Positions 31,001 to 56,950 of a DNA stretch of 64,000 nt are shown here, piece after piece (position 1 is the first letter of the stretch; each line of letters starts with the position of its first letter). Source of the DNA: Styela clava (taxonomy: Eukaryota); NCBI RefSeq assembly GCF_964204865.1, contig NC_135261.1, positions 19,778,001-19,842,000 of the forward strand, given 5' to 3'. A model generated the notes under the pieces. It made no database searches, was not told the origin of the DNA, and saw nothing but the letters and a program-made list of their open reading frames with translations. Made by a program: the position numbers and the translations under genes.

Positions 31001-31442
31001 TAAATAGCAGAACGGATTTGTGGAAAAACCATAATTCTCTATTTTCCTAAATACTCATGGTAATTTAATAGAATTTTAACAAACAATGTGGACTGAGTAA
31101 TTATTATAAAATATGATAAGATGTGAAAGACAATTACAATAATATGAGTATTTTATTCAGTTTTAATAATTTGTTCTGTGTGATTTCTGTGTGATGTATA
31201 GTATATATAGTCATTTTCTCAGTATTACCTGGCCACGAAGAATAAAACAAGCATATGATGATTGGTGGGATAATATGGTTCTTAGCTCTAAATTCTTCAT
31301 TCTAATTTCAATTTTTTGTTCAATATAATTATTCATATCGAGAGAATTATGTATTCACATCGGCTCGCATTATTTATAAGAATGATTATAATGGTCTTGA
31401 GTTATATATCACGAACATTAAATTATTTATTCTTATTTAACT

Positions 31443-32290
31443 TCCTAGCATCCAACTGCAGCGTGAGGGAAAGGCTCGTATAAAAGAAATTTTTCTTGCA
31501 TTTCGTTGAGCCGTAGAAAGATTTCTGAATACATTTTCTTTCCTTGCAATCCGAAACCAAGTAACCTCTGTCGCTGATATCTCTTGGGACATGATATATT
31601 ATCCTTCTAGCCAGGGAATGCTCTGTGTTTAAATAACTGAATATTCAGACATGGAATCGTTTCAATATCTGGTTTAAAAATGGTTTATAGCAATCCGAAA
31701 ATCGTTGCTTCAAATGAAATACTGGATATGGGTTTATCTCTCTTGCACGCATCCACACGGTGTCTGAAAATAAGTTAATATTTGGTCACTTCGGTATTGC
31801 TAAATTAGAATACTCAAGACAAGTTGGAATCTGACATGGGTATCTACTGCTCGGTTAAAAAAACAATGTTATGGGCAACCTGAGAACCATTGCTTCAAAT
31901 GGAATACTGGACACGGGTTTATCATTCTTGCACGTGACTAACACGATCCCAATTTCTGGTTCCAAACGTGCATGAAAAAGCTGAAACTAAATTGGAGGCT
32001 TTTATAACTCGAATAATTTAGATTAAGTGTATATTGATGTAAAATCGGATATGCTTGTGAAAAAGCGGGAAGTTCATTTGCATACTAATTACATACCGCT
32101 TTTGGAAACTATATTCTCATTCCAAACTATGGAAAACTGAAAGCACTGAACAATACAACATTGAACTAATCAGTTACAATAACAACGAACATTTTAAGAA
32201 CATTTCCTTCGTATAGCTTTCCATATTCTTCGTAGATTGTCTGTTGGTCATGGAAACACTAAATAGCGAAACACTGAATTGACACGGACA
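31443..32290 (-). pseudogene. Scrambled fragments of the cystine-knot-like family (exon-4 remnant 32170-32290, exon-3 remnant 31443-31623)
   Basis: CFAI*CFHDQQTIYEEYGKLYEGNV...VRCYCN* and LVSDCKERKCIQKSFYGSTKCKK...PFPHAAVGC, with stops, frameshifts and a lost donor. Confidence 0.8.
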
Positions 32291-34020
32291 AGAAAAATTG
32301 AATAATTTTTAACAACACTAAGGTAATAAAAAACGTTCATAGCTTTCCACTACAAATATTAAGAAAAAACAATCGTGTTTACTATTTTACGAATTGAGTG
32401 AAATTGTAAAAAATGAGATTTTTTCACTGTTTTGTCACCGTTATTTGCGACTTGCAATATCACGGACACATATTCTTGGTGATAATGCAATTCTAATACC
32501 TGTATAATTAACAAATTTGCGGGTAGAAAAACATAAATTCGACTTGTACTGTGTATCACAGAACTCTCTCTCTGGTTTGAGACATTTCGATATGAGACAA
32601 CCATCAGTGTATACCATTTATTTGTCCTACGATAGATAGATACTGATTGACCCTAGACTTACATAACTCCTGGTTAATAACGTTGGAAACACACATTGCC
32701 AGAATGGTGAATCAAAATAATGATGCGTTGACCCACCAGGGCTTACGAATGCCGTATACATTGGTTCAAATATTACCTGTAAAGTATTGTGCGGCTATGC
32801 CCAACATTAGCACGTTATTGAAGGTTCAAATTATTTGAGGTTTTTGCGCATTCCAATTAAACTACCTGCCTTTAAATTATCTTCGCGAGCTGTCTATGCT
32901 TGGCTGCAAGCCTGTGCGCATAACTTTTTAACAATTTTATTTATGAATGAAATCATTACTCATCAGCTTGATCAACCGACATTTCTAACTCCATAGGAGC
33001 ACACCCACCTAACTTGTGCACATTTTTTGCGGCAAATGCTACAATTTCTCTAGTATTTCCTTACGTATCGAAGCACCAAGTAAAAACCTTTCCGCTACTA
33101 ACATCGTTTTTTTTTTTACAAATTCGTTCTGCTATTCAAATACCTTGTACTATTTTTTTCATATGTCACTTTATTATGACCCATTCTTTCTTTTGCAGTA
33201 TTGTTATAAAAAGTTCTTCAAGATCATGATTAAGGAATTTTTCATCTTTCCTAAAAGATATCTATTTTTGTAAACAAAAAGTCTTAAGTTTAATTCCTAC
33301 TGCATTGATAGTACACATTTTGTAAGCTGTTCCAAAATTATGACATCACTTCGAAGCAGGTTGGAATGTCGAGATATTGCGCCCACGGCACTGTATATAA
33401 TCTTTTACGTTGCTTCCAAATTTTTGTTTTTAAATATTTTGACATGAAACCATGCGTTCTTCATTAGCTGGTCTTCAATATTTTTCTCTGACAGCGCCAC
33501 AACAAGGTTACGTTATTGATTTTCTGCCTATCATCTTACATAAAAATGACGAGAAAAATCAGTACATTAATTGTAATTCACATATATTTCAAATCATTTC
33601 AGTAATCATTCATGTACAAGAAATATTTATAAAAATCGTCTATTTCTTTGAAAAATTCATCTTTTTCCCGGCGGGTATCGGGAATAACAATTGTATGCAT
33701 TCATGCAGTCGCATCCACACGGTGTCTGAAAACATTTTATATTTGGTCACTGTGGTATTATTATTTCAAATAGAATACTCAAGAACAGCTGGCACTGGAC
33801 AAGCGTAGTTACATCTCGGATAAAAACACATAAAAGCAAACGATTTTAACATTTATTAGCAACGTGAACAAAATTTTCGTCATGCTCTTTAGCTTATTGA
33901 TAATTAAATCTTTGATATCACTTTGAAATCAACGTGTTGATATGTTGGCATAACATCATGTAAACAATTGTGGGTTTTGACTTGTAAACTGGAGGGATTC
34001 ATTATATTCAACGATCTATA

Positions 34021-34861: not shown

Positions 34862-35060
34862 ATCTAGGTTACGTGTATATTTATATGAGATCGGATATTT
34901 TTATCAAAGTTCATTCGGGAAGGTTCATTCGCATACTAATAACATACCACTTTTGGAAACTTCATTTCTAATCCAAACTATAGAAACTGGACGCACTGAA
35001 TTATACAGATTAGAATTTTCGACAATACGACCTATTTTGGTATTAAAAATCGACAACTTA

Positions 35061-36309
35061 TCAGTTACAATAACAACGCACCTTTATAACAACATCTCCT
35101 TTGTATAGCTTTCTGTTTTCTTCGTAGATTGTGTGTATGTCACGGAAGCACCAAATAGTGTAGCATTTACAAGAGATTTGTTCAGAATCTTCATCTTCTG
35201 GCGTAGGATACATTTGTGGTTCTTCATCTTTCATGGGTTCCGGATACAAATGTGGTTTCCCATCTTTTGGTGGTTCATTGTGATTTTGGGGTTTTACCAA
35301 CTTACAGTTTGCATGCATTTTTCTTAAAATTTGATTTTGTATAAAAATTCAAAAAGTTAATACGACTTTATTTTCAAAATACGAAAATCTACATAAACGA
35401 ATTTCAAGATGGAAAATACAATCACGACGAACTGGGCGTTTTCTTCTTTTAATGCTCCGTAATACTGTTGAATCATACATTACAAAATTCTCATTTGTTA
35501 AAGTACCAAGCAACTTACTTGCATTCAACTGCAGTGTGAGGGAAAGGCTTAAATAATCGAACCACTTTTCTGCATTTTGTTGAACCGTAAAAGGATTTCT
35601 GAATACATTCCCTCTCATCGCAACCAGAAACCAAGTCACCGATGTAGCCGATACCTTTTGGGACGGAACATGAATCTTTCGTTTTGGGAAATTTTCTGTG
35701 CATGAAATCGTTTCATTATCGTCATATTGATTTATTAGTATATAAGGTAATAAACACATAACATGTTTAGTATACAAAATATGTTGTTCTTTAAATCATA
35801 AGATTTTGATGATAGTATACTGATCTATACTTGCATTCCAAGATGAGAAAATATTCAACTTAATTGGGTTTGCATTTGGGATTAAAACCAATACGCATGA
35901 ATAAAATTGTTTTCGGTTCAGTAGGGAATTAAAATAAATTCAGATCAAAAATACAACTTACTTAAAACCTCTGCAGTCTGGAGTGTTTTTGAAATCAAGT
36001 CCTGTTTCTTTTGGAAAATCAAACTTTTTTGCAGAGTAGACAGATATCTGAAAATGGCATTTCAATGTAAAATTGGCCATTGGTAGATTATAGAGCTACT
36101 TTTCTGAGAGTGGAATATGAATAATCGTCGTAATATACTCAGTATTTTATTTTACGCAATATAGCACTTGAGTATGAGTGCAAAACATATACATCATGCC
36201 AGCATACCTCAGGATCAAATTTAGCAAAGAAATCTTCAAGATTGACTTCTTTCTTCTTTTCGTATCCACAGGCTCCAACAATCATGATAACCAAGATTAC
36301 AATCTTCAT
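35061..36309 (-). CDS. Secreted cysteine-rich protein, putative cystine-knot (noggin/trunk-like) family copy A; exons 36208-36309, 35962-36047, 35519-35695, 35061-35322
   Basis: In-phase GT-AG joins (0,2,2) give MKIVILVIMIVGACGYEKKKEVNLEDFFAKFDPEISVYSAKKFDFPKETGLDFKNTPDCRGFKKFPKTKDSCSVPKGIGYIGDLVSGCDERECIQKSFYGSTKCRKVVRLFKPFPHTAVECKKMHANCKLVKPQNHNEPPKDGKPHLYPEPMKDEEPQMYPTPEDEDSEQISCKCYTIWCFRDIHTIYEENRKLYKGDVVIKVRCYCN. The gene model is supported by the paralog at 40618-42119; the family name is inference. Confidence 0.85.
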
Positions 36310-37198
36310 TGTTTGATATATTTTTTACAAGTTTTCTGAAACATAAGTGTAAAATTACATAACCAAGTTCTTTAAATTTCAAACATACACATTATGAGTC
36401 AAATAAGAATAAAACCTAATGTTGAAACACAATCCAAAATAAATTTGATATCTTCTTCAAATCTCGATAGCTAAATATCAGCAACTTTTTATAGTCAACC
36501 TGAACTAACAGGATGACTGGCGTTTCTTATCATAAAAATACGAGGGAAAGATTTAATATAGAAGAGAAAATATCCGCACATATTCGTGGGCCAATCAGAG
36601 ACTGCCAATTTCTCATATTTAATTAAAAATGGAAAAAAGGGTTGATTGTCGTTGGAAGGTTCACGACGTAGTTTTTGATCATAAGCTTTTGTTATCCTGT
36701 TGTCGAGCATCTAACATCGTTATTTTGGTTCTGAGGTTTCCTAATCTTACACAACCCATCCTTTATTGAAAATATTTAAAGTGGTGATTATGGCATAATA
36801 AACAGGATTGTCATGAAACAGTAAATTTATTTATTGATATCTGCATTCATAACATAACAAAAATAAACCGTACATTGAGGTAGTTCGCTTCTTTCTATTT
36901 ACTTGATATTTTATCAGAATGCCATAGATATCCTAATATATTTGATAAAATAAAGAGCATTAGTTTTTCTGTACAATTTTCTCGTTTTTTCACTGAATTA
37001 CTTCGTTAAAATATACACGTTTTTTTTTTCTATAAACACTGGAATTGCTGAACATTTTCAACAGGTTCACCAAGAATTTAACACGACAAAAATCAATTTC
37101 GATGCTACAGAAAGGGGAGTTGTTCGCTCGGATTCGCCCCATGGTTTAAATGAACGTCATTTTAATATAAACAAATAAGACGTTTAATACGATGTATG

Positions 37199-37527
37199 CA
37201 GTGGTGGGATTCAAATTTTGCGTCAGCCGGTTCTGTTTCAAAAAGTCATTTTTTTAGCAAATAAACTGATTGTTTCTAATTACTTCCTAATTAACATTTC
37301 GAAATAATGGTTAAGTACGCATCAATATGTAAAATTAGCATCGAAATTTTTGATGATGTTGTGGATTGTCTATATTGCTGAGTGTAATATATACTCGTTG
37401 ATAATGAACTTGAAATCCATTGACAGCAACCAGCAATGCTAGCCGGTTTGTGGATCTCACAAAATTCCGTGAGACGGTTCTATGGAACCGGTGGGAAACG
37501 GTGGGAACCGGCTGAATCCCGTCACTG
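37199..37527. mobile_element. hAT MITE
   Basis: TIR cagtggtgggattca / tgaatcccgtcactg; aaccgg subrepeats; flanks gatgtatg / aatatatg (6/8). Confidence 0.8.
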
Positions 37528-37719
37528 AATATATGTAGTTATTTATATCTATAAATGTCTAGGATAATGATAGTGATTTATTCATGCTTTTCTAAAATGA
37601 ATAAAATCGAGTTATTGAGAATTTTAATAAGTAAATGTACGTGCGATTAGAACTAATATTCAGGAATAAAATTTCGCGCGTTTTAGTATGAGAATAAAAC
37701 ACTGAAAAATAAAAATTAC

Positions 37720-38074
37720 CTGAAATATATATCTACATTTTGAAGAGATTTTTAAATCACGTCCTTTTTCTTCCGGGAAATCAAACTTCCTTGCCAAATC
37801 TCTGTGAATTGAAAAAGATATTTAAAGTAATAGATTGATGTAGATTGATATAGAATGATTTCTTTGGAGCAGAAATAAAATAATCGTCGTAACGACCTAT
37901 GTTTTTCAGTCGGCACTATACCGCACGAGAATACATGAGTGCAAAAGTATTACATCATACTAACATACTTCACGGTCGAATGAATCCAACAACTTTTTGA
38001 GATTAATTATTTTTTCTTCTTCTTTCTGTTTCCGCACACTCAAACAACCTGGGAACGAAGATTGCTATCTTCAT
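37720..38074 (-). pseudogene. Family copy B: frameshifted exon 1 plus exon 2 only
   Basis: ATG AAG ATA GCA ATC... shifts frame and hits a stop before ...FDRE|gtatgt. Exon 2 reads DLARKFDFPEEKGRDLKISSKCRY; exons 3-4 are absent. Confidence 0.8.
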
Positions 38075-40048
38075 TGTTTAATATATCTTCATTACACAAA
38101 CTTTCTGAAACTTAGGCAAAACGACATATGACTTTTAAATTCACACAGTATGAATCAAATCCTAATGTTAAAGATAAAACCAGAATAAACCTGATATTTT
38201 GTAAAATTTCTAATGGTAAAGTATTATCAACCAAAAGTTAAATGTGGGCGTTCTATTATACAAAAATGTGTTGTTAGGTTGATCCCATATGTCTAATCCA
38301 GACAGAGAAGGCAAGATATAATAAATACAAAAAATAACGCATATTTTCGTGGTCCAGAGGCTGTATCAATTTCTCATATTTAACTAGAGATTGAAAAAAG
38401 GTTGAATGTTCGATGTACGTTTAATTACGTATAGGTAAAAAACACCAACTAGCATCGTAGCTGCGGTTCAGTGGTCTCCTAAGTTTATGAGATGAAACTC
38501 ATTCTGTATTTAAAACATTACAAACATTACTGTATTAAAACAACAAGAAGTGACACAATAAACAGTTCTTATAAAAATGTCAAAAGAGTTTATTGAGATT
38601 CTGTCCTCATAATCGCACAGAAGACAGTGCACTAAAACTAAAGTAATTAAATGTTGTTCCTAGATTTATTCATAGTTGAAATATATGAATATATTGAAAC
38701 ATATATACTATAAAATAAGATAAAATATCGTATATGTTTTTGATGTTTTTCAAACGTCTTGTACGTTTCATTGCATTTGATAAAACGAAGAGCATAACTT
38801 GTATTTCGCAAGATTTTGAGGTTTTTTTTTCATTAAGGGGCTTTGTTACAATGTACATCATGTGACATATGGACATTTCTATTATGGCTAAATATTTTTA
38901 TCAGTTTCAGAAGATTATATTACATAATGAGAAAATGTAATAGCATCATTTCAATTATAATCATGCGTTACATTAAAATGGTGTGCAGTCTCAATCACAG
39001 TGAGTTGTACATGTTCAAACCATTGTGTTTTCTATATTGTTGCAGGATATCCACTAGAATTTTTTTTGAGCAAAGAAGTCAGTAATCTGTTTCATTTTTG
39101 TCTTCATTTTATGCGAGAGAGTGAAAACAACAATTTTTTTGCAACGAATTTGATTTTTCCTAATGTCAATTATTTTGCATGCCTAAAGTATTCCGTTTAT
39201 AACTAAAATATATAGTTGGGGGTATGTTCATCCATATCATGAAACGTTATGGAATTTTGAATGTGATCTAAGTTTCTTGCGCATTTCAGTTAGACAACCT
39301 ACCCTCAAACTATCCCTATATGCTGTGTATGCCTAGCTACAAGAGGGCGCGCATAACTTCGACTTTCATTATCAAAGAAATTATCGCTAGTTAGCTTAGG
39401 CAGTGGATGTTTCTAAATGTATATTAGCACATCTGCCTAATTTGTAATCGTTTTTTTTTTCTTACTTCAGCCATACTTTCAGTAATTTTGATAGGTATGG
39501 AAAAATATTGATCTCGCGACTTGTGGCACTGCCCCCAATATTTTGTGTTGTTACAAAAAAATTTGCGAAAACGTCATACGTCCTTGCAATCTTCCACAAA
39601 GAAACATTTTCTCTCCTAGTTCTACGTGCAAAGTTAAGTTATTGATCCTGATTAATCATTCATATGGCGTAAATATGACAAGACTCATTGCTGCATTTAA
39701 TTGTAATTCAAAAATAATTCAAATTCAAGTCATTTACGGACATAAATGATCAACTGTACATGATACAATATCTGTACAGTTATTCCATATCTCTAAAAAG
39801 TTTCATTTTCTTTTTTTATAGTAGTCATAACCAGGGTAAGCCATCCTGCAGTCACATCCACATGGGGTCTGAAAAAAGGTAATAAGATTACTTTGGTTTT
39901 ACTGTTATAAACGAATGGGGTGGGCAGTTACAACCGCGTTTTTACAACAGCTTTGATAAAGACAAGCAGGCACGAGAAAATGCGCAGTGACAGTCAGCTC
40001 ATAGAAGTACATTAAAATTCAAATGATCCAAAACCGTCTATGCAACTT

Positions 40049-40270
40049 AAGAGTCCTGCTGCACACCAACACAAATGTATTTTCTTGTCATTGTTGTAAA
40101 CGGCTTATCTGAGGAAGTCTGATTTTGGTCAGACGAAACGTTATAGAAATACAAGAAATTTGTGTTAGTGTGCAGCAGGACTCTTGAACTGGATAGAATG
40201 GTATTTTTATTCCTACTACATCATCCTTGCATTATACGCATACGGATCCACTAACGCAAAGGCATTGAGG
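40049..40270 (+). mobile_element. Penelope-like terminal repeat (pLTR) fragment with short inverted 5' piece
   Basis: Homologous to 61860-62045. aagagtcctgctgcacaccaacacaaat is inverted relative to atttgtgttagtgtgcagcaggactctt. Contains a hammerhead core. Confidence 0.7.
40105..40146 (+). ncRNA. Minimal type I hammerhead ribozyme motif (Penelope-type), copy 1
   Basis: TTAT-CTGAGGA-A-GTCTGAT-TTTG-GTCAGAC-GAAACGTT-ATAG: core CUGANGA/GAAA, 7-bp stem II, palindromic stem III, stem I TTAT/ATAG. Confidence 0.75.
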
Positions 40271-40617
40271 ATGGGAGTGAGTCTCGACCAACTTCTACTG
40301 ATAGTCATAATCCTGTTTGCATTCTCAACAAAATGGCGGCCATTTTTGACTTATTAGTAACTAAATCATCGACATCAATGTGTTAATTTTTTACATATCG
40401 TATGTTACCTTTGCTTACAATATGAAAATGTTAAACGTTGTAAGTTAGTAGGGTAATAATAATTTGAAATAATTAATTTCAGACTACATTTATCTTTCAC
40501 GATTAGGCGGTAATATTATTGCATTGCTCATGCTATTAAATTAATGTTGTGTCCACAGCATCCTTTTCAATTTAGGAAAATCTGAAATTAGTAGATTATA
40601 AAACAATATTCAATTCG

Positions 40618-42119
40618 TTAATTACAATAACAACGCACCTTTATAACAACATCTCCTTCGTATAGCTTCCCGTTTTCTTCGTAGATTGTGTGTATGTCAC
40701 GAAAGCACCAAATAGTGAAGCATTTGCAAGAGACTTCTTCAGCGTCATCATCTTTTTCTGGTTCAGGATTAAAATTTTTGCTTTTTGAGGGATCCGGATA
40801 CAAATGTGGTTTTCCATCGGTTGAAGGTTTCGGGTACAACTCTTTGTCATCATGAGGTTTTGCAAACTTACAGCTTTGATTCTTGGTTCTATTAAATTCA
40901 TTTTGATGAACACTCATGTTAACACAAGTATATCTATCTTGAATGACAAACATTATCAATTTTAAACGTAACAAGTTGTTGTAGTTTAAGAAGACAAATA
41001 CGGCAAACTGAGCTTTCTTTTTCCTCAGTTTTAATAATGTAGTGCCAATTTTTTTTCTTACAAATGCGTATCAGAGTTCATGATCATTAGTGACGATGGT
41101 GTTAAATGCTACTTTCTTCTTTTTAGTTTTTTATTGTCAAAAAAATGTTGTTTGAGATACTTGTTTTTCTATAAATAATATTGCGTATTCCCATTGACCA
41201 GATTTTTTATAGAAATGATCATAATGGACTCTAATTATATAGTAGAAAATTGGGTATTTAAATCATTTTTAAATAACAAAGCAACTTACTTGCATTCGAC
41301 TGCAGCGTGGGGGAAAAACTTATATAATCGAACTATTTTTCTGCATTTTGTTGAGCCGTAGTAGGATTTCTGAATACATATTCTCTCCTTGCAACCAGAA
41401 ACCAAGTCACCGATGTTGTCGATGCCCTTTGGGACAGGACATGTTTTATTCGAGCGGGGGTATTTTCTGTATATGAAATCATTTCATTATCTGCTACAAA
41501 TATTAAAAGCGGCTATAAACGAAGTAGTCAATCGTTTTGATAGATGTTGATTTTACAATCGACGTAAAATTTAGTATACGATTGGGGTTGTTGTTTAATG
41601 ATATTTCGATGACAATATTCTAAAATGTACTTGTTTTTCTAAGATGAAACAATCGAGTTGTTAGCAATTTTAATTAAATCGGTGATTCGTTTGTGATAGA
41701 ACCAATGAACAGAAATAAAATCTCAATTGGTTTGGCAGAGAAAAAAAATAATTTCAAAATAAAAAAAACTAATATATACCCGAAATTTCTGCATTCTGGA
41801 GTGTTTTTGAGATCAAGTGCTTTTTCTTTCGGGAAATCGAAGAGCTTTGCAAAGTCGTCAGAGATCTGAAAAAATGTAATTCCAATGTGAAATAGAATAA
41901 TGTTAAATTTTCGAGAGTAGAATTAGAATAAATCTCTAAATGACCTCAGTATTTTGCTTGTCACAATGCCACACGAGAGGATCAGTGATAAACTCATACA
42001 TAATATTAACATACTTCAAGATCGAATGTGGCATAGAAATCTTCGATATTAACTTCTTTGCTATATTTTCTTCCGCACGCTCCAGCAATCAGGAAAACGA
42101 AGATTACTACTATCTTCAT
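40618..42119 (-). CDS. Secreted cysteine-rich protein, putative cystine-knot family copy C; exons 42015-42119, 41780-41865, 41290-41466, 40618-40888
   Basis: Exon 2 (86 nt) and exon 3 (177 nt) have the same sizes and phases as copy A: MKIVVIFVFLIAGACGRKYSKEVNIEDFYATFDLEISDDFAKLFDFPKEKALDLKNTPECRNFGKYPRSNKTCPVPKGIDNIGDLVSGCKERICIQKSYYGSTKCRKIVRLYKFFPHAAVECKTKNQSCKFAKP...EEVSCKCFTIWCFRDIHTIYEENGKLYEGDVVIKVRCYCN. All cysteines are conserved. Confidence 0.85.
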
Positions 42120-44789
42120 TGTTTAATATGCTTTTTTACTCAAGTTTTCTGAAACATAGGTAAACCTTTAGCTAACAAAGTTCTATCTTGTTATTTTGAA
42201 TTTGTACTTTACCCTGCATTAGCTAAATGACGGGAAAAAAATGTTCTAGAAAAATACATGATACAATTGGAATCTTTGTTCAAATTTTGATAGCAAACTT
42301 TTATTAAATAACATGTAAATTTTATACTTTGAATATGTTTTATAAACATATTTTATTTTCTCTGTTGAGTTGATTTCTCGAGCATCTACTTCTCAGTTCG
42401 AAGTGAAATGTCTTGATTGATATTCAAACGACTGGGCTATTTATACATTAATTCATTACGTGGATGTCATATGTCTTATGTAGATAAACAAACGGAAGAA
42501 TAAATATAGACCAACCACACCCACATTTTTCGTTGTTCAATCGCGGGCTTTATAATCAGGGGTATTACGTAAGTCACGAACATCACATTTTGTTAACTTG
42601 TTTTTGTTTGTGATTTCACGAGCTTATAAGATAAAATCTATCTCGTATTTTTGTCTTCTATAACATTCCAATAACATAACATCTAGCAATTGTAACATTA
42701 TAAACAGTTCCCATAAAAACATTGAATTTGGTTATGAACATGTTAAAGATGGCATTTAAGACTTTCCTTTTTTGTAGTTTATTTTCAAAAATAACTATTC
42801 TTGAATATGTTATCAGAATGTCTTAGATGTTGCTCTATATTTGTTAAAAGAAAAAGCATTTTTTATGCAGAATTTTCACGTGTTTTTCCACTGAAAGGCT
42901 TTGTTTGAATAAAGGCTTTGATTAAATTTACGCCATGTAGCCATTGAAATATTCGAACCTAAAAACGACTATATATGTTCATAAGTTTTATGAAAATTAT
43001 ATCACTTTTTGACCAAATTTCATAAATCGCATGATTCATCTTTTCATATGATCATATAACTTAAAAACATATTCGCACCCACGCAACGCTTTGAATTTGT
43101 GTGTTGTAGTTATTTAGATTAGACGCTATGTATGGATTTGATGGACAATGAAAAAAAAAACGGCAAATACGGTTTTGATATTCTCGTCCATGTTGCGATA
43201 ATAAATCTTTAATCTGCAAACAAAACAAAAGAATATATTTTGAAAAATTTATTCTGAATACTTAATTCAAAATGTGTTTTATAAATATATTTAACCATTT
43301 TAGTTGAAAACCTAAAAAAAAACTAAAATCCAAGTGCTAAAAGCTTCCTACGCTATATATAAATACTAGGCAATAGTAAGTAGCCTACAAAGATAAATAG
43401 ATTTGTCGATGTGAATGTTCAAGTAGATATAACCTAGTAAAACCAATCACAAAAAGTTCACACAGCCACTCAGTTGGCATCAAACACTTACTCAGACTTT
43501 TTCTAAATCAGTTTGTGACTCAAATAAAATGAGCCTACCTTACATTTTCTTCTTATTGATATAAGAATTTGTTAATATATCTTTCCCCTGCATGTTTATG
43601 CCTTTGTTTGTGAGAGTAATACTCGCACCCAGTTGATATATAAAACATAGTTAAAATTGATTCTGTTTATAAAATTTTGAAAACACGCTATGTTGGTCAG
43701 TTACTAGCCCAAGTCACTCTTCCGTGAGCATTGATGTAAATTGCAAATAACTTAAAGGCTGCGAAACATTTAAGATTTTTATTAATTTGTGATTAATACT
43801 AATTAATAACTAAACAAGAAGAAAATAAATATGAATACCATATATTAAAAAAAAAATCGAATTGACATAACTATACAAAGATAATTTACTATTCAGAGTA
43901 AAGTACTGAAAATCTGGGGTCTTGTTGAGTCTGATAGAAGAAAAGGATTGAAAACCACAAAAAGAGAAATAAAAAACTATGGCTGTGGTAAAAGAGCCAA
44001 AATCGCATTACCCACAAAATCTGTAAACCAACCAAATCAAATATATTGTGTCTTATATTTTTGCAATATTGTGCTGATTTGTGACTCATATTCTAGAAAC
44101 TTCATGAACAATCACAATTCACGACATTTGACCTTGTGGCATGTACTGATCGTTCATTGGTTTCATTGGTAAAAGCGTGTTTCTCAATCTTGTTTTAATT
44201 TATTTGAATACTTCATATTAGCATCGTCTATTTCATCGATTATAATCTCCAAGTAAAATTTTATCATAACTTGAATATAAACAAAAGAAACTAAGGAGTC
44301 AGAATTTAGTGTTTAAGACGTATTGTATGAAATTAACTATTAAAATATAACTGGCAATTCCTTCGAAGTTCTGAGTTTGATATGTGCAAATTTAGAAATA
44401 ATCTGAAATAGCAAGCAATTTAATTAAAAATTATTTATCACAATTTTGTTGGATTTGTGCATATCGGGCAAAACCGTTATAGAAATAACGTGTAATCTAA
44501 CAAAGCACATCAGCGAAAACAAACAAAAAAATTCTTGGTGTCATTGAGTGAACTAAAACATGGGAGATATTCTGATAAAATATATTTATATACTACCTAT
44601 ATATATCTTGAGAATGTCGGTAAACACATGTGACATTTTATCTTTGAAAAATGAAGTAAACAGGATGTTAAAAAAGACTTTTACTTTATTGTTTATCATG
44701 TTTATGAATAAGGAGGCGGAATATAAATAAATAATTTTAACTTTTCACAGAAGCTCTGTTTATTATTATTAGATCAATAAATAAAGTGT

Positions 44790-45110: not shown

Positions 45111-46346
45111 CTACCGGGAGTCAAAACTCTGAATGAAAAAAGAGGGAATTCCCACCGAAATATTTGGTTCACAAGGTTTTCTACTTCTTCCACCCTTTGG
45201 GTAGGCGTTTAACATTTCTACCCTAACAACCCCACCCTAATCGATGCGAAGATCAACCTTCTTGCAAGCCTGCAAACGTACTATAACCACCCAAAGGAAG
45301 CATGAAAACACGACAGGTTTTCAAGATTTAACTAATTTATTAAAACAGTAAATATTCGGCGAAATTGACTACTAAAGGTCGCAAATAAATACAGTCGTAA
45401 TGAGAAAGTCAAGTTACGCCTTTTTTGTTTTTTGAATGGGAATTCTTCATTTGGCAGGAGCATAGGCATGCTGTGATGAATGTCAAGCTTTTCTGCTACC
45501 CAATGGTATTTGTAGATTGAAAAGCCTGCAACAAGAGTCCATCACTGCCATTGCTTTTGTGTAATTAAAGCTTCCATTCGAACTGTGATCTAGTGATAAT
45601 CCAGAGTTCATCATTGGAATGGACTTACAATCTAAAAATACAACAAAAAAAAAAGATTAGATGAGTATGTCTTTTGCAGTAGAGAAAAGGGTCGCGTGTT
45701 AATTTTGAACATATTCAATGAAAATGTTTCCAACTGAATTGGAGACCTTGTACTGAGCAAGGAATTTATGATAGTAATTTATAAAAGTGGTGAACAACAC
45801 AGACTAGCTATTTTTTCAGTTTGTCTTCTTACCTAGGTCATATTGAAATAGACGAATTTTACTAATCTAAGTTATATCCCAATCCACTAGGGCTTACTTT
45901 TTTTATATGATCCAGAATGTTTTATAAGATTAATTAAAACTCTACTTTTTAATTTAATTTTGTCCGGAGAGAACACAGCCCAGAAAAATGAGCAACTAGG
46001 CGCCCAGTTTTAAATCATACAGTTGAATAGGAGTTCTTGTTTACAGCACATGCACTTTTTGGCACGGCTATGAGTTCTGACTATTTATCGTCAAGCGCGA
46101 GTGTCATTTAGTCTGTCGACGTCGTTAAACTAAACCCAGCAAGATTATTCCCCCACGCAGCTATTAAATATTGTGATTTTAGTAATTTTAATTTCGTTTA
46201 AAACACGATTTCTCCATAGATTTATTGGCGTGGCCGCCTAAACTGTCTCAAAATAAACGATAGTAATTGTGAAATATTATAAAATAGTAAAATAAAAAAC
46301 ATTCTCGACGTTTTATAGGTACTTCTAGTCGGTGCTGATTGATATC

Positions 46347-46782
46347 CAGGCTTGTCCACTGGACATATTTTTCTGTCCCATTCCCATTCCATAGCAATTA
46401 TGCCTGTTTCATCCCATCCAATCCCATGGATTCATTGGAATAAAATTCAATAAAAATTGTTAAATTTAGGTTTAGCGTCTACTAAATAGGACTACATGTA
46501 CGAAGGGACATGCAAAACAACAAAATTTGCGGACAATATTAACTTTATATTCATAACTATCATAGATGTGTCCATCAGCCTCTTCACGAAATGTGTTGTT
46601 AATGCTAAATATATTTTGCTCTTCATAACTAACAAGATAGCTATGCTCAAATATAAGGACACGAAGTCCATAACTAAATGTTCTACCATCATTTCCCCGA
46701 AAATTATACAGTTTTCGTGTTCCACGGGGAAAAAAGTGTGCTGTTTCATTCCATGGGAATCCTATTCCCATGGACAAGCCTG
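46347..46782 (+). mobile_element. hAT MITE family B, copy 2
   Basis: TIR caggcttgtcca / tggacaagcctg; TSD ttgatatc / ttgatatg; homologous to 20850-21248. Confidence 0.9.
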
Positions 46783-47189
46783 TTGATATGCTTTTATTTC
46801 GACTGTAATATATTGACGCGGCGATTACGATTAAACACAAAATATTTTAAAAATGCTTTAAACTAAAACGTAAGGCGGCGGCGCTAGAATGCGTGGGCGA
46901 TATTCGTTATTCTTTTAAACATGAAAAACGATATTCGAAGCTCGCGATATTAATATTAAATTGGAACTGCACATCCCGGCCTATAAGTTTTCTAATTCAA
47001 CACGGAAATTACTAACGTCTGTGCACACAATGCATCTGAATCAATTAATGCATGTGGATACCAGACATCAATTTCATATTATGTGCTATATTTATTTTTC
47101 AATCTAAAATAATGTGTACTATGAATAACGCTAAAAGACCATTGTTTTAACCCGTCTGCCCTACACAGCACACTTAATTAAGGTAATAA

Positions 47190-47303
47190 TTACATAGTAT
47201 CGGTATCGGCAATGCCGGAATTTTTGTAATATCAGCATATCGGTATTTTTAGTTGGTATCGGATCGTTATCGGCGACAAAAAGTGGTATAGGTACATCTC
47301 TAG
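47190..47303. mobile_element. hAT-like MITE end fragment
   Basis: atcggtatcgg subrepeats ending in ...ggtacatctctag. Confidence 0.4.
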
Positions 47304-48169
47304 TTAAAACAAAACTGCTCAATCTTATATTCCGACAATCTCAGTCTTTTATTGAAACAAATCTGTGAAGCAAATCTACTTTTCTGATTGCATGAAGCAG
47401 TTGTGAAAAAAAAGTAATATATTATCTAAACTCAAGAAATTTAACATTTTCACAAGCACCTTGTATAATGTATTGATCATTACATGAAGTAATTTTAATA
47501 TAGAATTTATTTTCTTCAAAATGTGTATCGGGTTAGCAACCACATGTAAGCCGCCAGCAACATAACAAATGATAACAGAATATTGCGATTATGAACTGCA
47601 TAATTACCGTAATCAAAAAAAATCCATTGCTATTAGTTTTACACTAAATATCAAAATTGGATGACTGGTTAGTCCACGAATTCCAATGATATTTTTCCTC
47701 TTATGTTCATCTACATCTACACGTTCTTTTATCTAGGATCTAGATGACGTTCCGTACTTAATGTGATGCCCCAACAGGGCCTTGGAACGCTGTGCGTTGC
47801 TGCTCCAAATGTTCAATTGTCTCATATGCCAGAACTATTTTCTCCTTTTTTTGACTAAAATATATTGTGGGGTATGTACGATAGTTGCATGAAACGTGTT
47901 TGTAATCTTTGGAGCGATCTTGAGATTTTTCGCATTTCAGTTGGGCAATCTGATTTGTATCGTAAGTAAACTTGGTCAACCGACGTATCTCTAACTCCTA
48001 TAGGCACATTCGCCTAACGTGTGTATTTATATTCATTTGGACAAATTCTCCGATTTCTGCTCACAAATGTTGACACTTCCACATTGCTCAGTGCTTGTTT
48101 TGCAGTATTTTCATAACAAATATCGCTAAGATCAGAATTCTAACATTTTATATTTAGGCTAGGAAACAT

Positions 48170-50574: not shown

Positions 50575-51630
50575 TCAACGTTTTATGCCACTTTTATTAT
50601 GGCCCATTTTTTGTTTTGCAGTAATGTTATATAAAATTTTACCAAGATCATGATTATGAAATTTTTCATCTTCCGTGAAAGATATTTGTTTTTGTGAAGA
50701 AAAAGTCCTAAACTTAATTCCTTCAGCATTGATAGTATAAATTTTGTGAAGCTGAAATTCTGCCATACCCTCGAAGCTGGTGGGATTGGACAATTATTGC
50801 GCCCACGGCTAGTGGCACTGTATATAACCTTTTACGCTGCTTCATTTTTTTTTTAAATATTTTTTGCGACAAAATCATGCGTTTTCCAACCGACAAATCT
50901 TTTTCTCTGACAACGCCACAGGCAAGGTTACGTTATTGATTTTCTGAATAATCATCTAACATAAACAAGAGGAGACTCATTAGTACATTTATTGTAGTCC
51001 ATATATATTTCAAATCATTTATGGACATAAAGGACTATCTGTACACGAAGGAATATTAATAAACACCGTCTATTTCTTTGAAAAATTCATCTTTCTCATC
51101 GCAATAACCGGCACTACAATATGCACCCCTGCAGTCGCATCCACACGATATCTGAAAAAAAGTTAATATATATATGGCCACTTCTGTATTATTATTGCAA
51201 ATTTAATACTCGAGACAAGCTGACAAAGGACAAACGTAGTTACAGCTGGGATCAAAATACAATTAAAGCAAACGATTCGAACTTTAGATAGGACTCTGAA
51301 TATAATGTCCGCCATGCTTTAATTCTTTGGCTTATTGATAATTAAATCTTCGATATTTAATTTGAAATCAACTTGTTGATATGTTGACATAACATCATGT
51401 AAACAATCGTGGGGTTTAGACTTCGAAATAAGGAGATTTATTACATTCAATGATCTTGATTACGTGGGTATTGATATGAGATCGGTAATTCATATAAAAG
51501 TATACAGTAAGTTCATTTACATACTATTGACATACCACTTTTGGAAACACTATTTCTATTCCAAACTCTAGAAAACGGGGAGCACTGGATTATACAACAT
51601 TGAGCTAGTCAATTACGATAACAACACACT
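50575..51630 (-). pseudogene. 3' remnant of another family copy (E): last codons plus ~1 kb of 3' flank, cut by the satellite
   Basis: VCCYRN* at ~51609-51629 corresponds to VRCYCN*. 50575-51600 aligns by eye with 33160-34020 and 34860-35010. Confidence 0.7.
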
Positions 51631-54600
51631 ATGTCCTATTTCTCGCAATTTGTCCTTCTTGTCTAACACTTGTCCTGCTTTTTAAACTTTTCTCACACTT
51701 GTATTCCTACAGCTAAATTGCTCTGTTTGTATCACACTAATGCTGCTTCTCCCACTCTTGAGCTGTTTGTCCCACACTGGTCTTGCTTTTAACATATTTG
51801 TCACGTTTCTCGCACTTTCTATGCGTGTCTCACCGTTGAACTGATTGCCTCACAGTTGCTCTGTTTGTCCCCCACTTGTCCAGCTTTCTCAAACTTGTAC
51901 AATATTTGTACCTACATTTTTCCCGTTTGTCACTTCTTAGTACTGCTCTTAACACTCCTGCCCAACTTGTCCTGCTGTTCACACACATTTCCAGTTTGTC
52001 CAACTTTTTTCCAGTTTGTCTCACGCTTATTTTGCGTGTCACAACACTGTCCAGATTATCTCACACTTGATCTTCTTGCCTAGCTTGTCTCACACTTGTC
52101 TTGCTTGTCCCACATTTGTCACACTTGCCTTGTTTGTACCACACTTGTCCTGTTTGCCCCACACTTGTCATGCCTGTATCACACTTTGTCCTGTTTGTCT
52201 TTTCACGCTTTTTTCATAGCTTTCCTATTGGTCCCACACTTGTACAACTTCATTCTAACTTGTTATGAATGTCCCGCATTTATGGTGTTTGACCCATTCT
52301 CGTACAGTTAGTATCATACTTGTATAGCGTTTTACAATCTTGCCCAGCTTGTCTCACACTTGTCTTTGTGTATTAAACTTGCCCAGCTTGTTTCACATTT
52401 ATCTCTCTTGTATTGTACATGTTTTACTTTCTCTACAATTACCCAGCTTGTCAAAAAAGTGGGCTGTTTGTCTCCCACTTGTCTTGCTCGTATCACACAT
52501 GTCCTGATTTTTGCAACTTGTCCTGCTTTCTCTATAATTACACAGCCCGTCAAAAACCTGTGCTGTTTGTCCCCCGCCCCCTGTCTTGCCCGTATCAAAC
52601 ATGTCCTGATTTTTGCAACTTGTCCTGCTTGTCTTGATTTCCAAACTTTTTTCTCACTTGTAATGCTTTCCGCTAATTTACTATGCTTGTCCCGCACTTG
52701 TCTTGCTTGTCCTACACCTATCTAATTTAGCTCACACTTATTTCTAGTGTAACACCCCTGTCTAGATTATCTCACACTTGATCTGCTTGTCTTACACTTG
52801 TGTTGCTTGCTTGCATTCGCCACACTAGTATTGCTTGTACCACACTTGTCCCGTTTGCCCCACACATGTCTTGATTGTACTACACTTATTCTGTTTTTCA
52901 CCCATTGGCCATACTTTTCTCCAAGCTGTCCTGATGGTCCCAAACTTGTCCAGCATTTCTCAAACTTGTACTTCATATCCCACAATTATGATTGTTGTCC
53001 CACACTCGTCTAGCTTGTCTCATCTTCTATATCCTTTTCCAAACTTACCCTCGTTTTTCTTGTATCACACATGCCTCATACCTGTTCGATATTTTTCACA
53101 CCTGTCCAACTTATCTCACATCTGTCCTGCTTGTCTCACACCTGTCCTGCTTGTTACACGCATGCCCGATTTGTCCCACACTTGTACAGATTGTCTCACA
53201 CCTGTCCTGCTTATCCCATGGATATCCGTTTTCTCACTCTTGTCCATCTTGACTCACAACTATCCTGCTTTTTTCACACTTGTCTGGTTTGTTTCACACT
53301 TGTATCACACATGTCCTTCTCTGTCCCACACATGTCCTGTTTGTTCCACACTATTCCGGCTTGTCCCACACTTGTCAAGCTTGTCCCACACTTATCTTGC
53401 TTGTACCACACTTGCCCTGTTTGCCTCATAATTGTATTGCTTGTCGCACCTTTGCCCTGCTTGTCCCATACTTGTCTTGCTTGTATCACACTTGTCCTAC
53501 TTGTTCCACGATTTTCCAACTAGTCTTACACTTGTCTTTTTTGTTCTACCCTGTCTGGTGTGTCCTACACTTATCTTGCTTGCACCACACTTGCCCTGCT
53601 TGCCTCATAATTGTATTGCTTGTCGCACCTTTGCCCAGCTTTTCTCACACTTGTCTTGCTTGTACCACACTTGCCCTACTTGTATATTACTTGTCCTGCT
53701 TATAGCACACTTGAACTGCTAATACCAAACCTTTGCTCTTTTTACCACACTTATCTTGATTGTATCACACATGTCCTGATTCTTGCAACTTGTCCTAATT
53801 ATCTCACACTTGTCCTTCTTTCCAAACTTTTATCACACTAGTATTGCTTTCCGCTAATTTGCTCTGCTTGTCGCACACTTGTCTTGTTTGTACCACATAA
53901 ATGCTGGTTTTCCCAAACTTGAGCTGTTTGTCTCACACATGTCTTGCTTGTAACATGTTCGTCATGTTCTCGCACTTTTCATGCGTGTTTCCCAGTTGAC
54001 CTAATTGTCCCACAGCTGTGCTGTTCCTCCCACTTTTGTGTAGCTTTCTCAAACTTATACTACATTTGTACCTACATCTTTTCTGTTTTTCACTTCTTTG
54101 TACTGCTTGTAACACACTTGTCCAGCATGTCTCAAACTTGTATTTTTTGCTCTGCTTGTCCAACACTTGTCTTGCTTATCTAACACATGTCTTGATTGTC
54201 CAGCATGGCCAACACTTATCCTATTTGTCACACACTAGTACCATCTGTCTCAAACTTGTCCTGCTTGTCTCGAATCTGTCTATTGTGTCCCACACCTGTC
54301 CGGCGTGTCTCACACATGTCCAGCGTTTCAAACACTTGTTTTGCATGTCACACAGTTGCGCTGCTTGTCCTACACTTGCTTTGCTTGTGCCACACTTGCC
54401 CTGCTATACACACACTTATTCAGATGTCGCACACTTGTCCTGCTCGTCTAACACTTGTCTGCCTTGTCCCACACTTGTCGTTCCAGTCTCAAACTTGCCC
54501 CCGTTTCTCGAGGTCGACCTACCAGTCTGATACCAGTCCAGATTGTTCTGCTTGTCCCACATTTATCATGCTCGCACCACACTTGTCCGTTTTTTCCCAA

Positions 54601-56950
54601 ACTCGTTCTGCTTTTTCCACATTTGTTCTGATTGTCCTACGCTTTTTTCTGTTCGACCAACACTTGTTTTGCTAGTCTCACACTTCTGCAACTTGTCCCA
54701 CACTGGTCTTGTTTGTTTAACCCCTGTCCAGCATGTCAAACACCTGTAGTGTTTTCCCACACAGTCCTGTTTATCCCATTATTGTCCTGCTCGTCCCACA
54801 CTTGTCCAGCTTTACTCACACTTGTTTTGCTCGTCTCACATTTACTCTTTTTATCCACACTTGTCTTGCTTGTACCATACTTGCCCTGCTTTTCTGATGT
54901 TTGTCTTGCTTTTAGAACATTTGAAATACTCATCCCAACCCAGTACTGTTTGTCCCAAACTTTGCTTACTCGTATCACACGTGTCCTGTATCTTGAAACT
55001 CGTCCTGCTTGTCTCACACCAGTACTGTTTTCAGAACTTTTCCCGCACGTAAATTGTTTGCCGCTAATTCGCTATCCTTGTCGCAGTCTTTCTTGTACCA
55101 CACTAATCCTGCTTCTCCCACACTTGATTTGTTTGTGCTTACTTGTCTTGTTTGTATCGCATTTTTACTGACTCTCGCACTTTTCATGCTTGTCACACAC
55201 TTATCTTAACACATTTGTTTTTTGTCTTACTATTGACCAGATTGCCCCACACTTGTTTTGTTGGCCTCGCACTTATCCTGCTTGTCCCACACTTTCCCAA
55301 CTTGGCTCGCACTTATTTTGCGTGTCACACACCTGCACAAATAGTCTCACACTTGATCTCTTTCCATAACTTGGGTCACATTTATCTTGCTTGTCTCACT
55401 TGCTTTGCTTGTACTACACTTGTCCTGTTTGCCCCCACACATTTCTTGCTTGTATCACACTTGTCCCGTTTGTCCCTCACTTGTGATGATTTTCTCAAAT
55501 CTGTTCTGATGGTCCCACACTTGTCCAGGTTTTCTGAACCTTGTACTGAATGTCCCGCACTTATGTTTGTCCTACGCTCGTCCAGTTTGTCTCATTCTTG
55601 TATAGCCTTTTCCAAACTTGCCCAGCTTGTCTCACAATTTTCATTTTTGTTTAACACTGTCACAGCCTGTTTCACACTTAACTTTCTTGTCTCATACCTG
55701 TTCTATTTTCCCTACAATTGTTCAGCTTGTCTCATACCTGTCCTGCCTGTCCTACACATGTTTGGTTTGTCCCACACTTGTTTTGATTTGTCCACATTTA
55801 CACGGCTTGTTTCATTCTTGTCTTGCTTGTATCGTACTTACCCTGCTTGTTCCACGATTATCCAACTAAATTTACACTTGTCTTGTTTGTCCCTCCTTGT
55901 CTGGTTCTTCCCACACTTGTCCAGCTTCTTTCATATTTGTCTTGCTTGTCTCACATTAGCCCTTCTTGTCCACACTTATCGTGTTTGGACCACATTTGTC
56001 AGGCTTGTCTCATACTTTTCTTGCTTGTATCACGCTTGTCCTGCTTCTTTCACGATTCCCCAACCAGTTTTACACTTTTCTTTATTGTTTCACCCTGTCT
56101 GGTTTGTCTTACACTTGTCCATCTTTTTTCGCACCTGTCTTGCTTATCCCAAACATGTGCTGTGTGTCCCACACTTATCTAGCTCGTATCTCATTTGTCC
56201 TGTTTCTTGCAACTTGTCCTGCTTTTAAAGCTTTTCTCGCACTCGTATTCCTGCCGCTAATTTTCTCTGCTTATCACTCACTTGTCTTGCTCGTACCACA
56301 CACTAATGCTGCTTCTCCCTCATTTGAGCTGTTGTATTCTTGTCTTGCTTGTAACAAATTTGTCCTGTTTCTCGCACTTTTCATGCTGACCTGATTGCCT
56401 CACAGTTGCTCTGTTTGTCCCACACTTGCCCAGCATGTCTCACACTTGTCTTTGTTTTTTCACTCTTGTCCAGCTTGTCCCACACTTGCCTTGCTTTTTC
56501 CTAATTTCCTGCTTGTCCCACACTTATTTTCCGAGTCACACCACAATCCAGATTGTATTACACTTGATCTGCTTACCTAGCTTGTCTCACACTTGAACTG
56601 CTTGTCCCACATTTGCCACACTTGCCTTGCTTGTACCAAATTTGTTCTGTTTGCCACACACATGTCTTGCTTATATCACACTTATTCTCTATGTCCCACA
56701 CTTGGCATAATTTTCTCAAAGCTGTCCTGATGGTCCCACATTTGTCAAGCTTTTTTCAAACTTGTACTACATGTCCCGCACTTATGATGTTTGTCCCAGC
56801 CTCGTCCAGTTGGTCTCATACTTGTGTAGCCTTTTTCAAACTTTCCCAGATCGTCCCACACTTGTCTTACACTTGACTAGCATTTCTCACACTTGACTTG
56901 CTTGTCCCATATTTGCCACACTTGCCTTGCTTGTACCACACTTGCCCTGT
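51630..56950. repeat. Diverged satellite, ~20-bp unit CACACTTGTC(C/T)TGCTTGT(C/A)(C/T), ~5.3 kb, with ~1.2-kb higher-order repeat
   Basis: cacacttgtc recurs about every 20 bp throughout. The marker ccgctaatt falls at 52670, 53851, 55061 and 56254. Strong pyrimidine bias on the + strand. Confidence 0.95.

Follow-up and report, generated by a model that had tools for sequence, protein, structure and literature searches.

Two intact five-exon genes

The window analysed here is a 64,000-nucleotide stretch of the Styela clava genome (NC_135261.1, positions 19,778,001 to 19,842,000 of the forward strand), and coordinates given without a C label refer to positions within it. It contains two members of a tandem gene family, gene A (36309-33657) and gene B (42119-39803), which both lie on the minus strand, consist of five exons each and code for predicted proteins of 224 and 227 amino acids (aa), respectively. 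The gene models were obtained by three-frame translation of the minus strand together with a check of each splice site, and the joined frames are open in both cases. Joining of the A/B exons was used only to check frame, length, cysteine count and the ratio of non-synonymous to synonymous substitution rates (dN/dS). For the searches the exons of A and B were used singly, and RefSeq paralogues served as full-length proxies (P0002 and P0004, 69-84% identical to individual A/B exons).

Exon 1 of gene A (36208-36309) starts with the ATG and the signal-peptide-like sequence MKIVILVIMIVGACG, continues to ...FDPE and ends at a phase-0 donor, gtatgc. It is followed by exon 2 (35962-36047), which encodes ISVYSAKKFDFPKETGLDFKNTPDCRGF plus two bases, carries conserved cysteine (Cys) 1 and has the donor AA|gtaagt. 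The 58 codons of exon 3 (35519-35695; acceptor cacag, donor AA|gtaagt) contain Cys 2-6 and correspond to the first beta-hairpin of the fold model described below. Exon 4 (35082-35322) encodes Cys 7, a Pro/Tyr/acidic linker (KPHLYPEP...) and the segment CKCYTIWC...GDVVIK up to the donor AAG|gtgcgt, and exon 5 (33657-33725; acceptor ttttcag) encodes TPCGCDCMNAYNCYSRYPPGKR and the stop codon. Gene B is built in the same way: exon 1 (42015-42119) with the ATG and a signal-peptide-like N-terminus, exon 2 (41780-41865) with ISDDFAKLFDFPKEKALDLKNTPECRNF plus two bases and the donor GG|gtatat, exon 3 (41290-41466) with Cys 2-6, exon 4 (40639-40888) with Cys 7, the linker, CKCFTIWC...GDVVIK and again the donor AAG|gtgcgt, and exon 5 (39803-39868; acceptor ttttttcag) with TPCGCDCRMAYPGYDYYKKRK and a stop codon.

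A preliminary description of this locus had reported two intact tandem paralogues with signal peptides and identical intron phases. These points are borne out: splice sites are canonical in both minus-strand genes, the hydrophobic N-termini of both are signal-peptide-like, and all four introns are GT-AG introns with the phases 0/2/2/0, the first three as described before. The dN/dS value between gene A and gene B is 0.39, which argues that both copies have been under constraint since their duplication.

The C-terminus is encoded by a fifth exon

The preliminary description had assigned four exons to each gene and had ended the proteins with a near-invariant peptide, VRCYCN, whose CYCN was taken as the terminal C-x-C of a cystine knot. 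In gene A this peptide and its stop codon (35061-35081, minus strand) are a translation of the initial 21 bases of intron 4, past the donor: exon 4 ends ...VVIK, and VRCYCN begins exactly at AAG|gtgcgt, upstream of the fifth exon, which lay beyond the range of the preliminary description. The four RefSeq paralogue proteins retrieved first (P0001-P0004) all continue with K-TPCGC[DE]CR... and not with VRCYCN. Downstream of exon 4, at a distance of 1.36 kb in gene A and of 0.77 kb in gene B, lies an acceptor followed by TPCGCDC..., and in both genes exon 5 consists of this motif and a short tail. The six read-through codons differ freely among 33 paralogous loci (VRYYRN, VSCYRT, VCSYRN, VSKLCS..., VRISDI..., VDQYPN..., VCVFFSF) with only the GT constant. 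The position of the donor, the continuation in RefSeq, the downstream acceptor with exon 5 and the variation among paralogues together identify VRCYCN as intron read-through; the peptide is not kept in other paralogues, and the real C-terminal C-x-C-x-C sits on exon 5.

The exon-5 motif [TKIS]PC-x-C-x-C is present throughout the family, in 38 exon-5 pieces from 33 paralogous loci. Within the first ten exon-5 codons genes A and B differ by four synonymous and three non-synonymous changes, which leave TPCGCDC unchanged. RefSeq models of paralogues use the same splice from exon 4 to exon 5, and P0003 (LOC144430503) is composed of exactly exon 4 and exon 5 of the paralogue L008 at C16:17.82 Mb of the same assembly. 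A naive four-exon reading of these loci thus yields a wrong C-terminus; an isoform with a retained intron that ends in VRCYCN may exist in addition.

Size and distribution of the family

Exon 4 of gene A matches 61 places in the S. clava genome and exon 3 matches 54, which corresponds to a family of about 55 copies in tandem arrays. The matches cluster on C16 at 6.7-6.9, 7.6-7.8, 9.3-9.5, 12.3, 17.8, 19.8 and 20.4 Mb, with further clusters on C19 (0.93-1.06 Mb), C4, C5, C6, C1, C8 and C13. Word-based searches of 5.8e9 proteins returned only S. clava entries named "uncharacterized protein", and a profile-built word search, a lossy procedure, added one protein. With HMMER, a profile search against 1.84e9 cluster representatives yielded 13 proteins, of which 12 belong to S. 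clava and one, P0016, to a Logan assembly. The sequence of P0016 shares only 41-53% identity with any S. clava locus, so that the family also occurs in at least one further organism. Judged from these searches, it is most likely a family without detectable sequence relatives that is so far confined to S. clava and one other organism.

The word searches returned no protein with the exact sequence encoded by A or B, and both genes seem to lack protein models. The term "unannotated" in the preliminary description thus holds for these two copies and not for the family, whose other members appear in RefSeq as "uncharacterized protein LOC...". In the literature we did not find the family, its LOC/XP identifiers or any cystine-knot, neurotrophin-like or coagulogen-like family of Styela named. 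One RefSeq model on C4, "ferroxidase HEPHL1-like" (P0009, XP_039248989.2, 967 aa), contains a complete family member at residues 783-960 and is probably a gene-model fusion with an adjoining family gene of the cluster at C4 17.9-18.0 Mb.

Sequence comparison with known families

The preliminary description had placed the proteins near noggin and trunk and had suggested a comparison with the profile hidden Markov models (HMMs) of Noggin, Spaetzle and IL17. Using every exon of A and B and 11 full-length paralogues, we found no match to any Pfam family, Noggin included, at expectation values (E) up to 10. Below-cut-off matches in this search (CMC4, EF-hand_9, SAM_TNK and others) were discarded as chance. 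Searches of the PDB by sequence and by profile likewise gave no match at E up to 10.

The Noggin HMM (PF05806, cut-off 24.1 bits) identified a single canonical, single-exon noggin gene with 248 bits at C14:16602752-16603390, which is not a locus of the family. With the IL17 HMM (PF06083) at least 32 canonical IL-17 domain exons scored above the Pfam cut-off in the S. clava genome, none of them at a family locus, and alignment of the family with 14 S. clava IL-17s by hhalign gave a probability of 1%. The IL-17 genes form tandem arrays of their own (C3 2.19-2.23 and 14.84-14.87 Mb, C5 14.7-15.08 Mb, C2 and C10) and represent a second expansion of cystine-knot cytokines in S. clava, separate from that of the present family. 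The Spaetzle HMM (PF16077) matched neither the proteins nor the genome. No match was obtained with the NGF HMM (PF00243) on proteins or genome either, where the control of the genome search was also silent, so that this result alone does not show absence. The motif line-up with vertebrate noggin in the preliminary description was reproduced by no alignment tool and rested in part on the intronic peptide.

Structure prediction

For structure prediction a family alignment of 79 rows was assembled from in-frame exon-3/exon-4 pieces of about 35 paralogous loci and 15 full-length RefSeq members. The paralogue P0008 (186 aa), which has a short insert, was modelled on this alignment with AlphaFold2. 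The model has a mean predicted local distance difference test score (pLDDT) of 77.6 and a predicted template modelling score of 0.64, and the five models range from pLDDT 65.7 to 77.6. It shows a small ordered N-terminal segment and two long beta-hairpins, residues 93-124 and 137-173, with a pLDDT of about 90, ending in C-x-C.

The comparison of the predicted structure with known folds by Foldseek, also suggested before, was carried out with this paralogue model and gave lists dominated by cystine-knot factors. The top 30 or so PDB matches were neurotrophins and coagulogen, followed by sclerostin, AMH, PDGF, IL-17 and Spz, with E from 1.5e-3 and template modelling (TM) scores of 0.45-0.63 on the target. 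A Foldseek-independent scan of 48,161 representative chains with VIA-align returned 32 chains at Z of at least 2, and 26 of these 32 are cystine-knot growth factors. NGF (Z 4.7), coagulogen (4.1), proNGF (4.0), IL-17A (3.7), PTTH (3.5), gremlin (3.5), SOST (3.4), noggin (2.7, 7ag0_A) and Spz (2.4) were among the matches of this wide scan. When the Foldseek list was re-aligned, NGF reached Z 5.2 and NT-3 Z 5.1 (81 aligned residues, root mean square deviation 3.9, model residues 88-174 on chain residues 11-112). Coagulogen had Z 4.1-4.4 with 98-102 aligned residues and the longest coverage of the model (41-175), and IL-17 Z 3.7-3.9. In the ESM atlas two members with a mutual identity of 40% were placed beside clusters of Spaetzle, NGF, IL-17 and Noggin at 0.91-0.93. 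A homodimer prediction for residues 60-180 of P0008, using two copies without the family alignment, received a score of 0.00, a result that speaks neither for nor against binding.

The features of the superfamily, namely two long hairpins, C-x-C at the C-terminus and a predominance of knot proteins among the structural neighbours, were all found on the predicted model. Among the individual folds neurotrophins are the best matches to the predicted paralogue structure, but at modest scores (Z 5.2 at most, Foldseek E 1.5e-3). The hairpins, two aligners and the language-model neighbours agree on a predicted cystine-knot cytokine fold that comes nearest to those of neurotrophin and coagulogen, a reading that is supported at the level of the fold. 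The cystine-knot part of the preliminary description is supported at this level; its noggin/trunk part is not, since the HMM was blank on all members, the true noggin gene lies elsewhere and noggin has lower structural Z values than the neurotrophins.

Cysteine pattern and variable regions

Thirteen mature cysteines, and not 11 as counted before, are conserved in the family. All of them are kept in A and B, which contain 14 and 13 cysteines, respectively, after the signal-peptide-like N-terminus. According to the aligned ranges Cys 3 is located near CI of NGF and Cys 6 at the end of hairpin 1 (CII), Cys 8 and Cys 9 start hairpin 2, and Cys 12-x-Cys 13 falls on CV-x-CVI of NGF. The distance from Cys 10 to the final C-x-C is 26 residues; the corresponding spacing in NGF is 27 residues. 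P0011 lacks both Cys 2 and Cys 8 and P0007 both Cys 10 and Cys 11, and these joint losses hint at two disulfide pairs, Cys 2/Cys 8 and Cys 10/Cys 11. Cys 10 alone is missing in P0006, L031, L032 and L037, which leaves 12 cysteines. Since several copies have lost only this residue, Cys 10 could be the odd and possibly inter-chain cysteine, and the odd cysteine count would fit a disulfide dimer.

The segment between Cys 7 and Cys 8 differs strongly between members. In A and B it carries xLYPxP repeats with acidic flanks, in P0008 it is nearly absent and in P0015 it comprises about 200 residues of SGSYEPSSVPHGSN repeats; P0014 has a very high content of Tyr, Lys and Gly. On inspection, the insert is a variable loop and not part of the core. 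Many tails end with Gly followed by basic residues (PPGKR, SGRRR, GGGRR, WxGKK). A C-terminus of this kind usually serves as a signal for carboxypeptidase trimming and amidation, and the tails of the family may be processed in this way. In the translations of A and B the stretch from the signal peptide to the start of the first hairpin was found on inspection to have no furin site (R-x-x-R), and only one conserved K or R is present where exons 2 and 3 meet.

Transcript data

The run search listed no RNA run for the A/B locus. On 35000-40999 four RNA-labelled contig sets gave matches only to repeats (37.2-37.6 and 40.0-40.3 kb) and a small number of short pieces with 92-95% likeness, which probably derive from paralogues. 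No A/B exon junction and no spliced contig was found in these sets, which are assembled contigs from unknown tissues and cannot show silence of A and B.

Relationship to known cystine-knot proteins

The best structural matches are the neurotrophins (NGF, NT-3, BDNF and NT-4; PF00243) with Z 4.4-5.2, 81-94 aligned residues and Foldseek TM scores up to 0.63 on the target. Like these, the family is predicted to be secreted and to have two long beta-hairpins and a C-terminal C-x-C with a similar spacing in front of it. In contrast to the neurotrophins it has no sequence similarity to them, 13 instead of six conserved cysteines, no R-x-x-R furin site for a pro-domain and a long Pro/Tyr/acidic insert between the hairpins; moreover, the domain is split over three exons and exists in about 55 copies. 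The match with horseshoe-crab coagulogen (PDB 1AOC, Z 4.1-4.4) takes in both the N-terminal segment and the knot domain (41-175). Coagulogen and the family each have many extra disulfides, and both are invertebrate secreted proteins, in the case of the family by prediction, whereas the family shows neither sequence similarity to coagulogen nor a conserved cleavage motif for a clotting enzyme.

Spaetzle (PF16077) and IL-17 (PF06083) form the nearest language-model clusters (0.91), with Z 2.1-2.4 and 3.7-3.9, respectively. The arrangement in large tandem arrays is common to the family and the IL-17 genes of S. clava, but the Spaetzle and IL-17 HMMs miss the family, the 32 IL-17 matches lie at other loci and the hhalign probability against IL-17s is 1%. 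Tunicate IL-17s keep only an incomplete knot (PMC11087794), unlike the cysteine-rich family described here. Noggin (PF05806) and PTTH/trunk have the superfamily fold in common with the family and are weak structural matches: noggin, whose HMM gives no match with the family, reaches Z 2.7 and PTTH 3.5, compared with 4.7-5.2 for NGF, 4.1-4.4 for coagulogen and 3.7-3.9 for IL-17.

Interpretation and alternative explanations

With a probability of roughly 0.6 we consider A and B to be intact five-exon members of a fast-evolving tandem family of secreted, extracellular cystine-knot proteins of the NGF/coagulogen type. Each gene would give rise to a secreted protein of about 225 aa with a signal peptide and a short ordered N-terminal segment encoded by exons 1-2. 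Exons 3-5 would encode a disulfide-rich domain with a cystine-knot cytokine fold, in which two long twisted hairpins are closed by C-x-C-x-C, a Pro/Tyr/acidic insert of variable length (xLYPxP repeats) separates the hairpins and a short tail often ends with Gly and basic residues. The proteins would be exported, locked by disulfides and possibly dimerised via the odd cysteine. By analogy with Spaetzle, IL-17 and NGF they would act as extracellular ligands, most plausibly as cytokine-like factors of immune cells or haemocytes.

Several points weigh against this interpretation. The knot is supported at the level of a predicted fold, with a putative disulfide connectivity. The model itself is that of P0008, which shares about 40% identity with P0002, the full-length proxy nearest to A and B, and a first AlphaFold model of P0002 on a 24-row alignment had a pLDDT of 40.6. 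Structural Z values are low, 5.2 at most, and the tool warns that matches with Z below 8 may be due to an arrangement that is common; the ESM atlas in turn warns that ten neighbours of one clan also occur for a third of shuffled proteins. There is no sequence-level link to any cystine-knot family, neither in Pfam nor by PDB profile nor, at 1%, by hhalign against the IL-17s of the same genome. Several paralogues have lost Cys 10 alone, which disagrees with the simplest assignment of the cysteines on the NGF pattern, the RNA-labelled contigs contain no A/B junction, and the function is inferred by analogy from the fold and from the behaviour of the gene family.

Roles as a ligand and as clot or matrix material may both be compatible with the predicted fold. 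The same fold could serve a structural purpose in matrix proteins of haemolymph or tunic that clot like coagulogen, cross-link or adhere, with the Tyr/Pro/Lys-rich inserts as cross-linking or adhesive modules. We regard this as a tentative, rather improbable alternative: coagulogen ranks with the best structural matches and has the widest coverage of the model (41-175, 98-102 aligned, Z 4.1-4.4), the members differ mainly in the Tyr/Pro-rich insert, P0014 and P0015 have the composition and the repeat stretch described above, and dozens of copies suit bulk material as well as signalling, but the coagulogen Z ties with that of the neurotrophins, the sequences of the family and coagulogen are not similar, its members have no clip-protease site in common, and expression or proteomic support was not found in the literature. 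A further possibility is that the proteins have no cystine knot. AlphaFold may have produced a plausible-looking hairpin artefact when given a small Cys-rich protein and few aligned sequences, and the proteins would then have another disulfide-rich fold. Contacts between exons are supported by only 15 full-length rows, the five models are spread over pLDDT 65.7-77.6, the Foldseek E values are marginal (1.5e-3 or weaker) and single-clan neighbourhoods in the ESM atlas arise for a third of shuffled proteins as well. Two aligners, one of them independent of Foldseek, nevertheless selected almost only cystine-knot factors, in the independent case from 48,161 chains; the pLDDT of the hairpins is about 90, two divergent members have concordant language-model neighbours and the C-terminal C-x-C after a long hairpin is kept in every paralogue, so that a fold without a knot appears quite unlikely.

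Another explanation is that the proteins are true, highly divergent homologues of noggin or trunk/PTTH, that is, BMP antagonists or Torso-type ligands. Both proteins occur among the structural matches (noggin Z 2.7 with 98 aligned residues, model 40-174; PTTH Z 3.5), and in one neighbouring cluster of the ESM atlas 53% of the members have Noggin. The Noggin HMM, however, misses all members at E up to 10 while it finds the C14 gene at 248 bits, noggin lies about 2.5 Z units under the neurotrophins and the motif line-up stems partly from the intronic peptide, which makes such homology very improbable. It is also conceivable, if unlikely, that A and B are silent or dying copies of a family that functions elsewhere. 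No protein model with the A/B sequence appeared in word searches, the four RNA-labelled runs provided short pieces at 92-95% and no spliced contig, and a truncated copy and decayed fragments adjoin both genes. Against this stand the intact five-exon frames with canonical splice sites, the dN/dS of 0.39 and the 13 family cysteines kept in both genes, and RNA contigs from unknown tissues cannot show silence.

If the predicted fold of the NGF/coagulogen-like reading is true, a large and rapidly diversifying family of chordate cystine-knot proteins has gone unrecognised by domain databases. The setting would be an animal group for which loss of Trk-family receptors has been proposed, namely in Ciona (PMC13663574), and in which the IL-17s have incomplete knots (PMC11087794). 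The family would then fill a gap in the account of how neurotrophin, Spaetzle and IL-17 ligands evolved at the boundary between invertebrates and vertebrates and would provide concrete candidate ligands or clotting proteins for research on sea-squirt immunology and wound healing. A more far-reaching and doubtful idea is that styelids possess a system of their own, in which about 55 proteins with an NGF/Spaetzle/coagulogen fold, unrecognisable by sequence, would form a haemocyte cytokine repertoire or a clotting system. The hypervariable Tyr/Pro insert would then be an expanded knot loop, and the receptors would be ones not yet linked to such ligands in chordates.

Neighbouring sequences

Between A and B lies a truncated pseudogene on the minus strand, copy C (37735-38074), which lacks exons 3-5. 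Its exon-1-like part (37969-38074) is frameshifted and contains a stop codon, and an exon-2-like part is located at 37735-37794. The region upstream of copy C (38367-38431) resembles the upstream region of gene A. In A, B and copy C the sequence gtttcag|AAA(A/G)(C/T)TTG is present on the minus strand 26-30 nt upstream of the ATG (36310-36345, 42120-42160 and 38075-38115, respectively). An acceptor at this position is as expected for an intron in the 5' untranslated region or for spliced-leader trans-splicing, which is common in tunicates.

Two decayed family fragments were identified at 31432-32276 on the minus strand, a frameshifted exon-3-like piece (31432-31624) and an exon-4-like piece with a stop codon (32196-32276), whose order is wrong for one gene. 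A single exon-5-like piece at 51059-51202 (minus strand) consists of the acceptor ttttcag followed by ISCGCDCRGAYCSAGYCDEKDEFFKEIDGVY and a stop codon and is matched by the family HMM only at E = 10; a search upstream of it for matching exons 1-4 found none. In the region 45412-47425 (minus strand) an exon-3-like ...CNQKSRFASQICFNKRLRL (47333-47398, E 9.5) and an exon-5-like ...ACLCSCQMKN... (45424-45483, E 3.3) were noted; neither match is significant, and the pieces represent at best a very divergent or decayed relative of the family.

Interspersed repeats are located in intron 4 of gene B (40037-40197) and between gene A and copy C (37200-37600). Both are covered at very high depth and 90-95% likeness by contigs of all four runs, and the repeat at 40037-40197 is a 50-nt inverted-repeat element similar to miniature inverted-repeat transposable elements. 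A further region, 52000-57500, shows a strong strand bias over about 5 kb, with a GC skew of about -0.36 and an AT skew of about -0.38. It contains degenerate tandem units, long stop-free frames on both strands and peptide-like repeats on the minus strand (...DKCGTSKTSVGQAGQVW.KQ...); Tandem Repeats Finder gives only local units of 102 and 179 nt, and the region may be a minisatellite or a repeat-protein gene.

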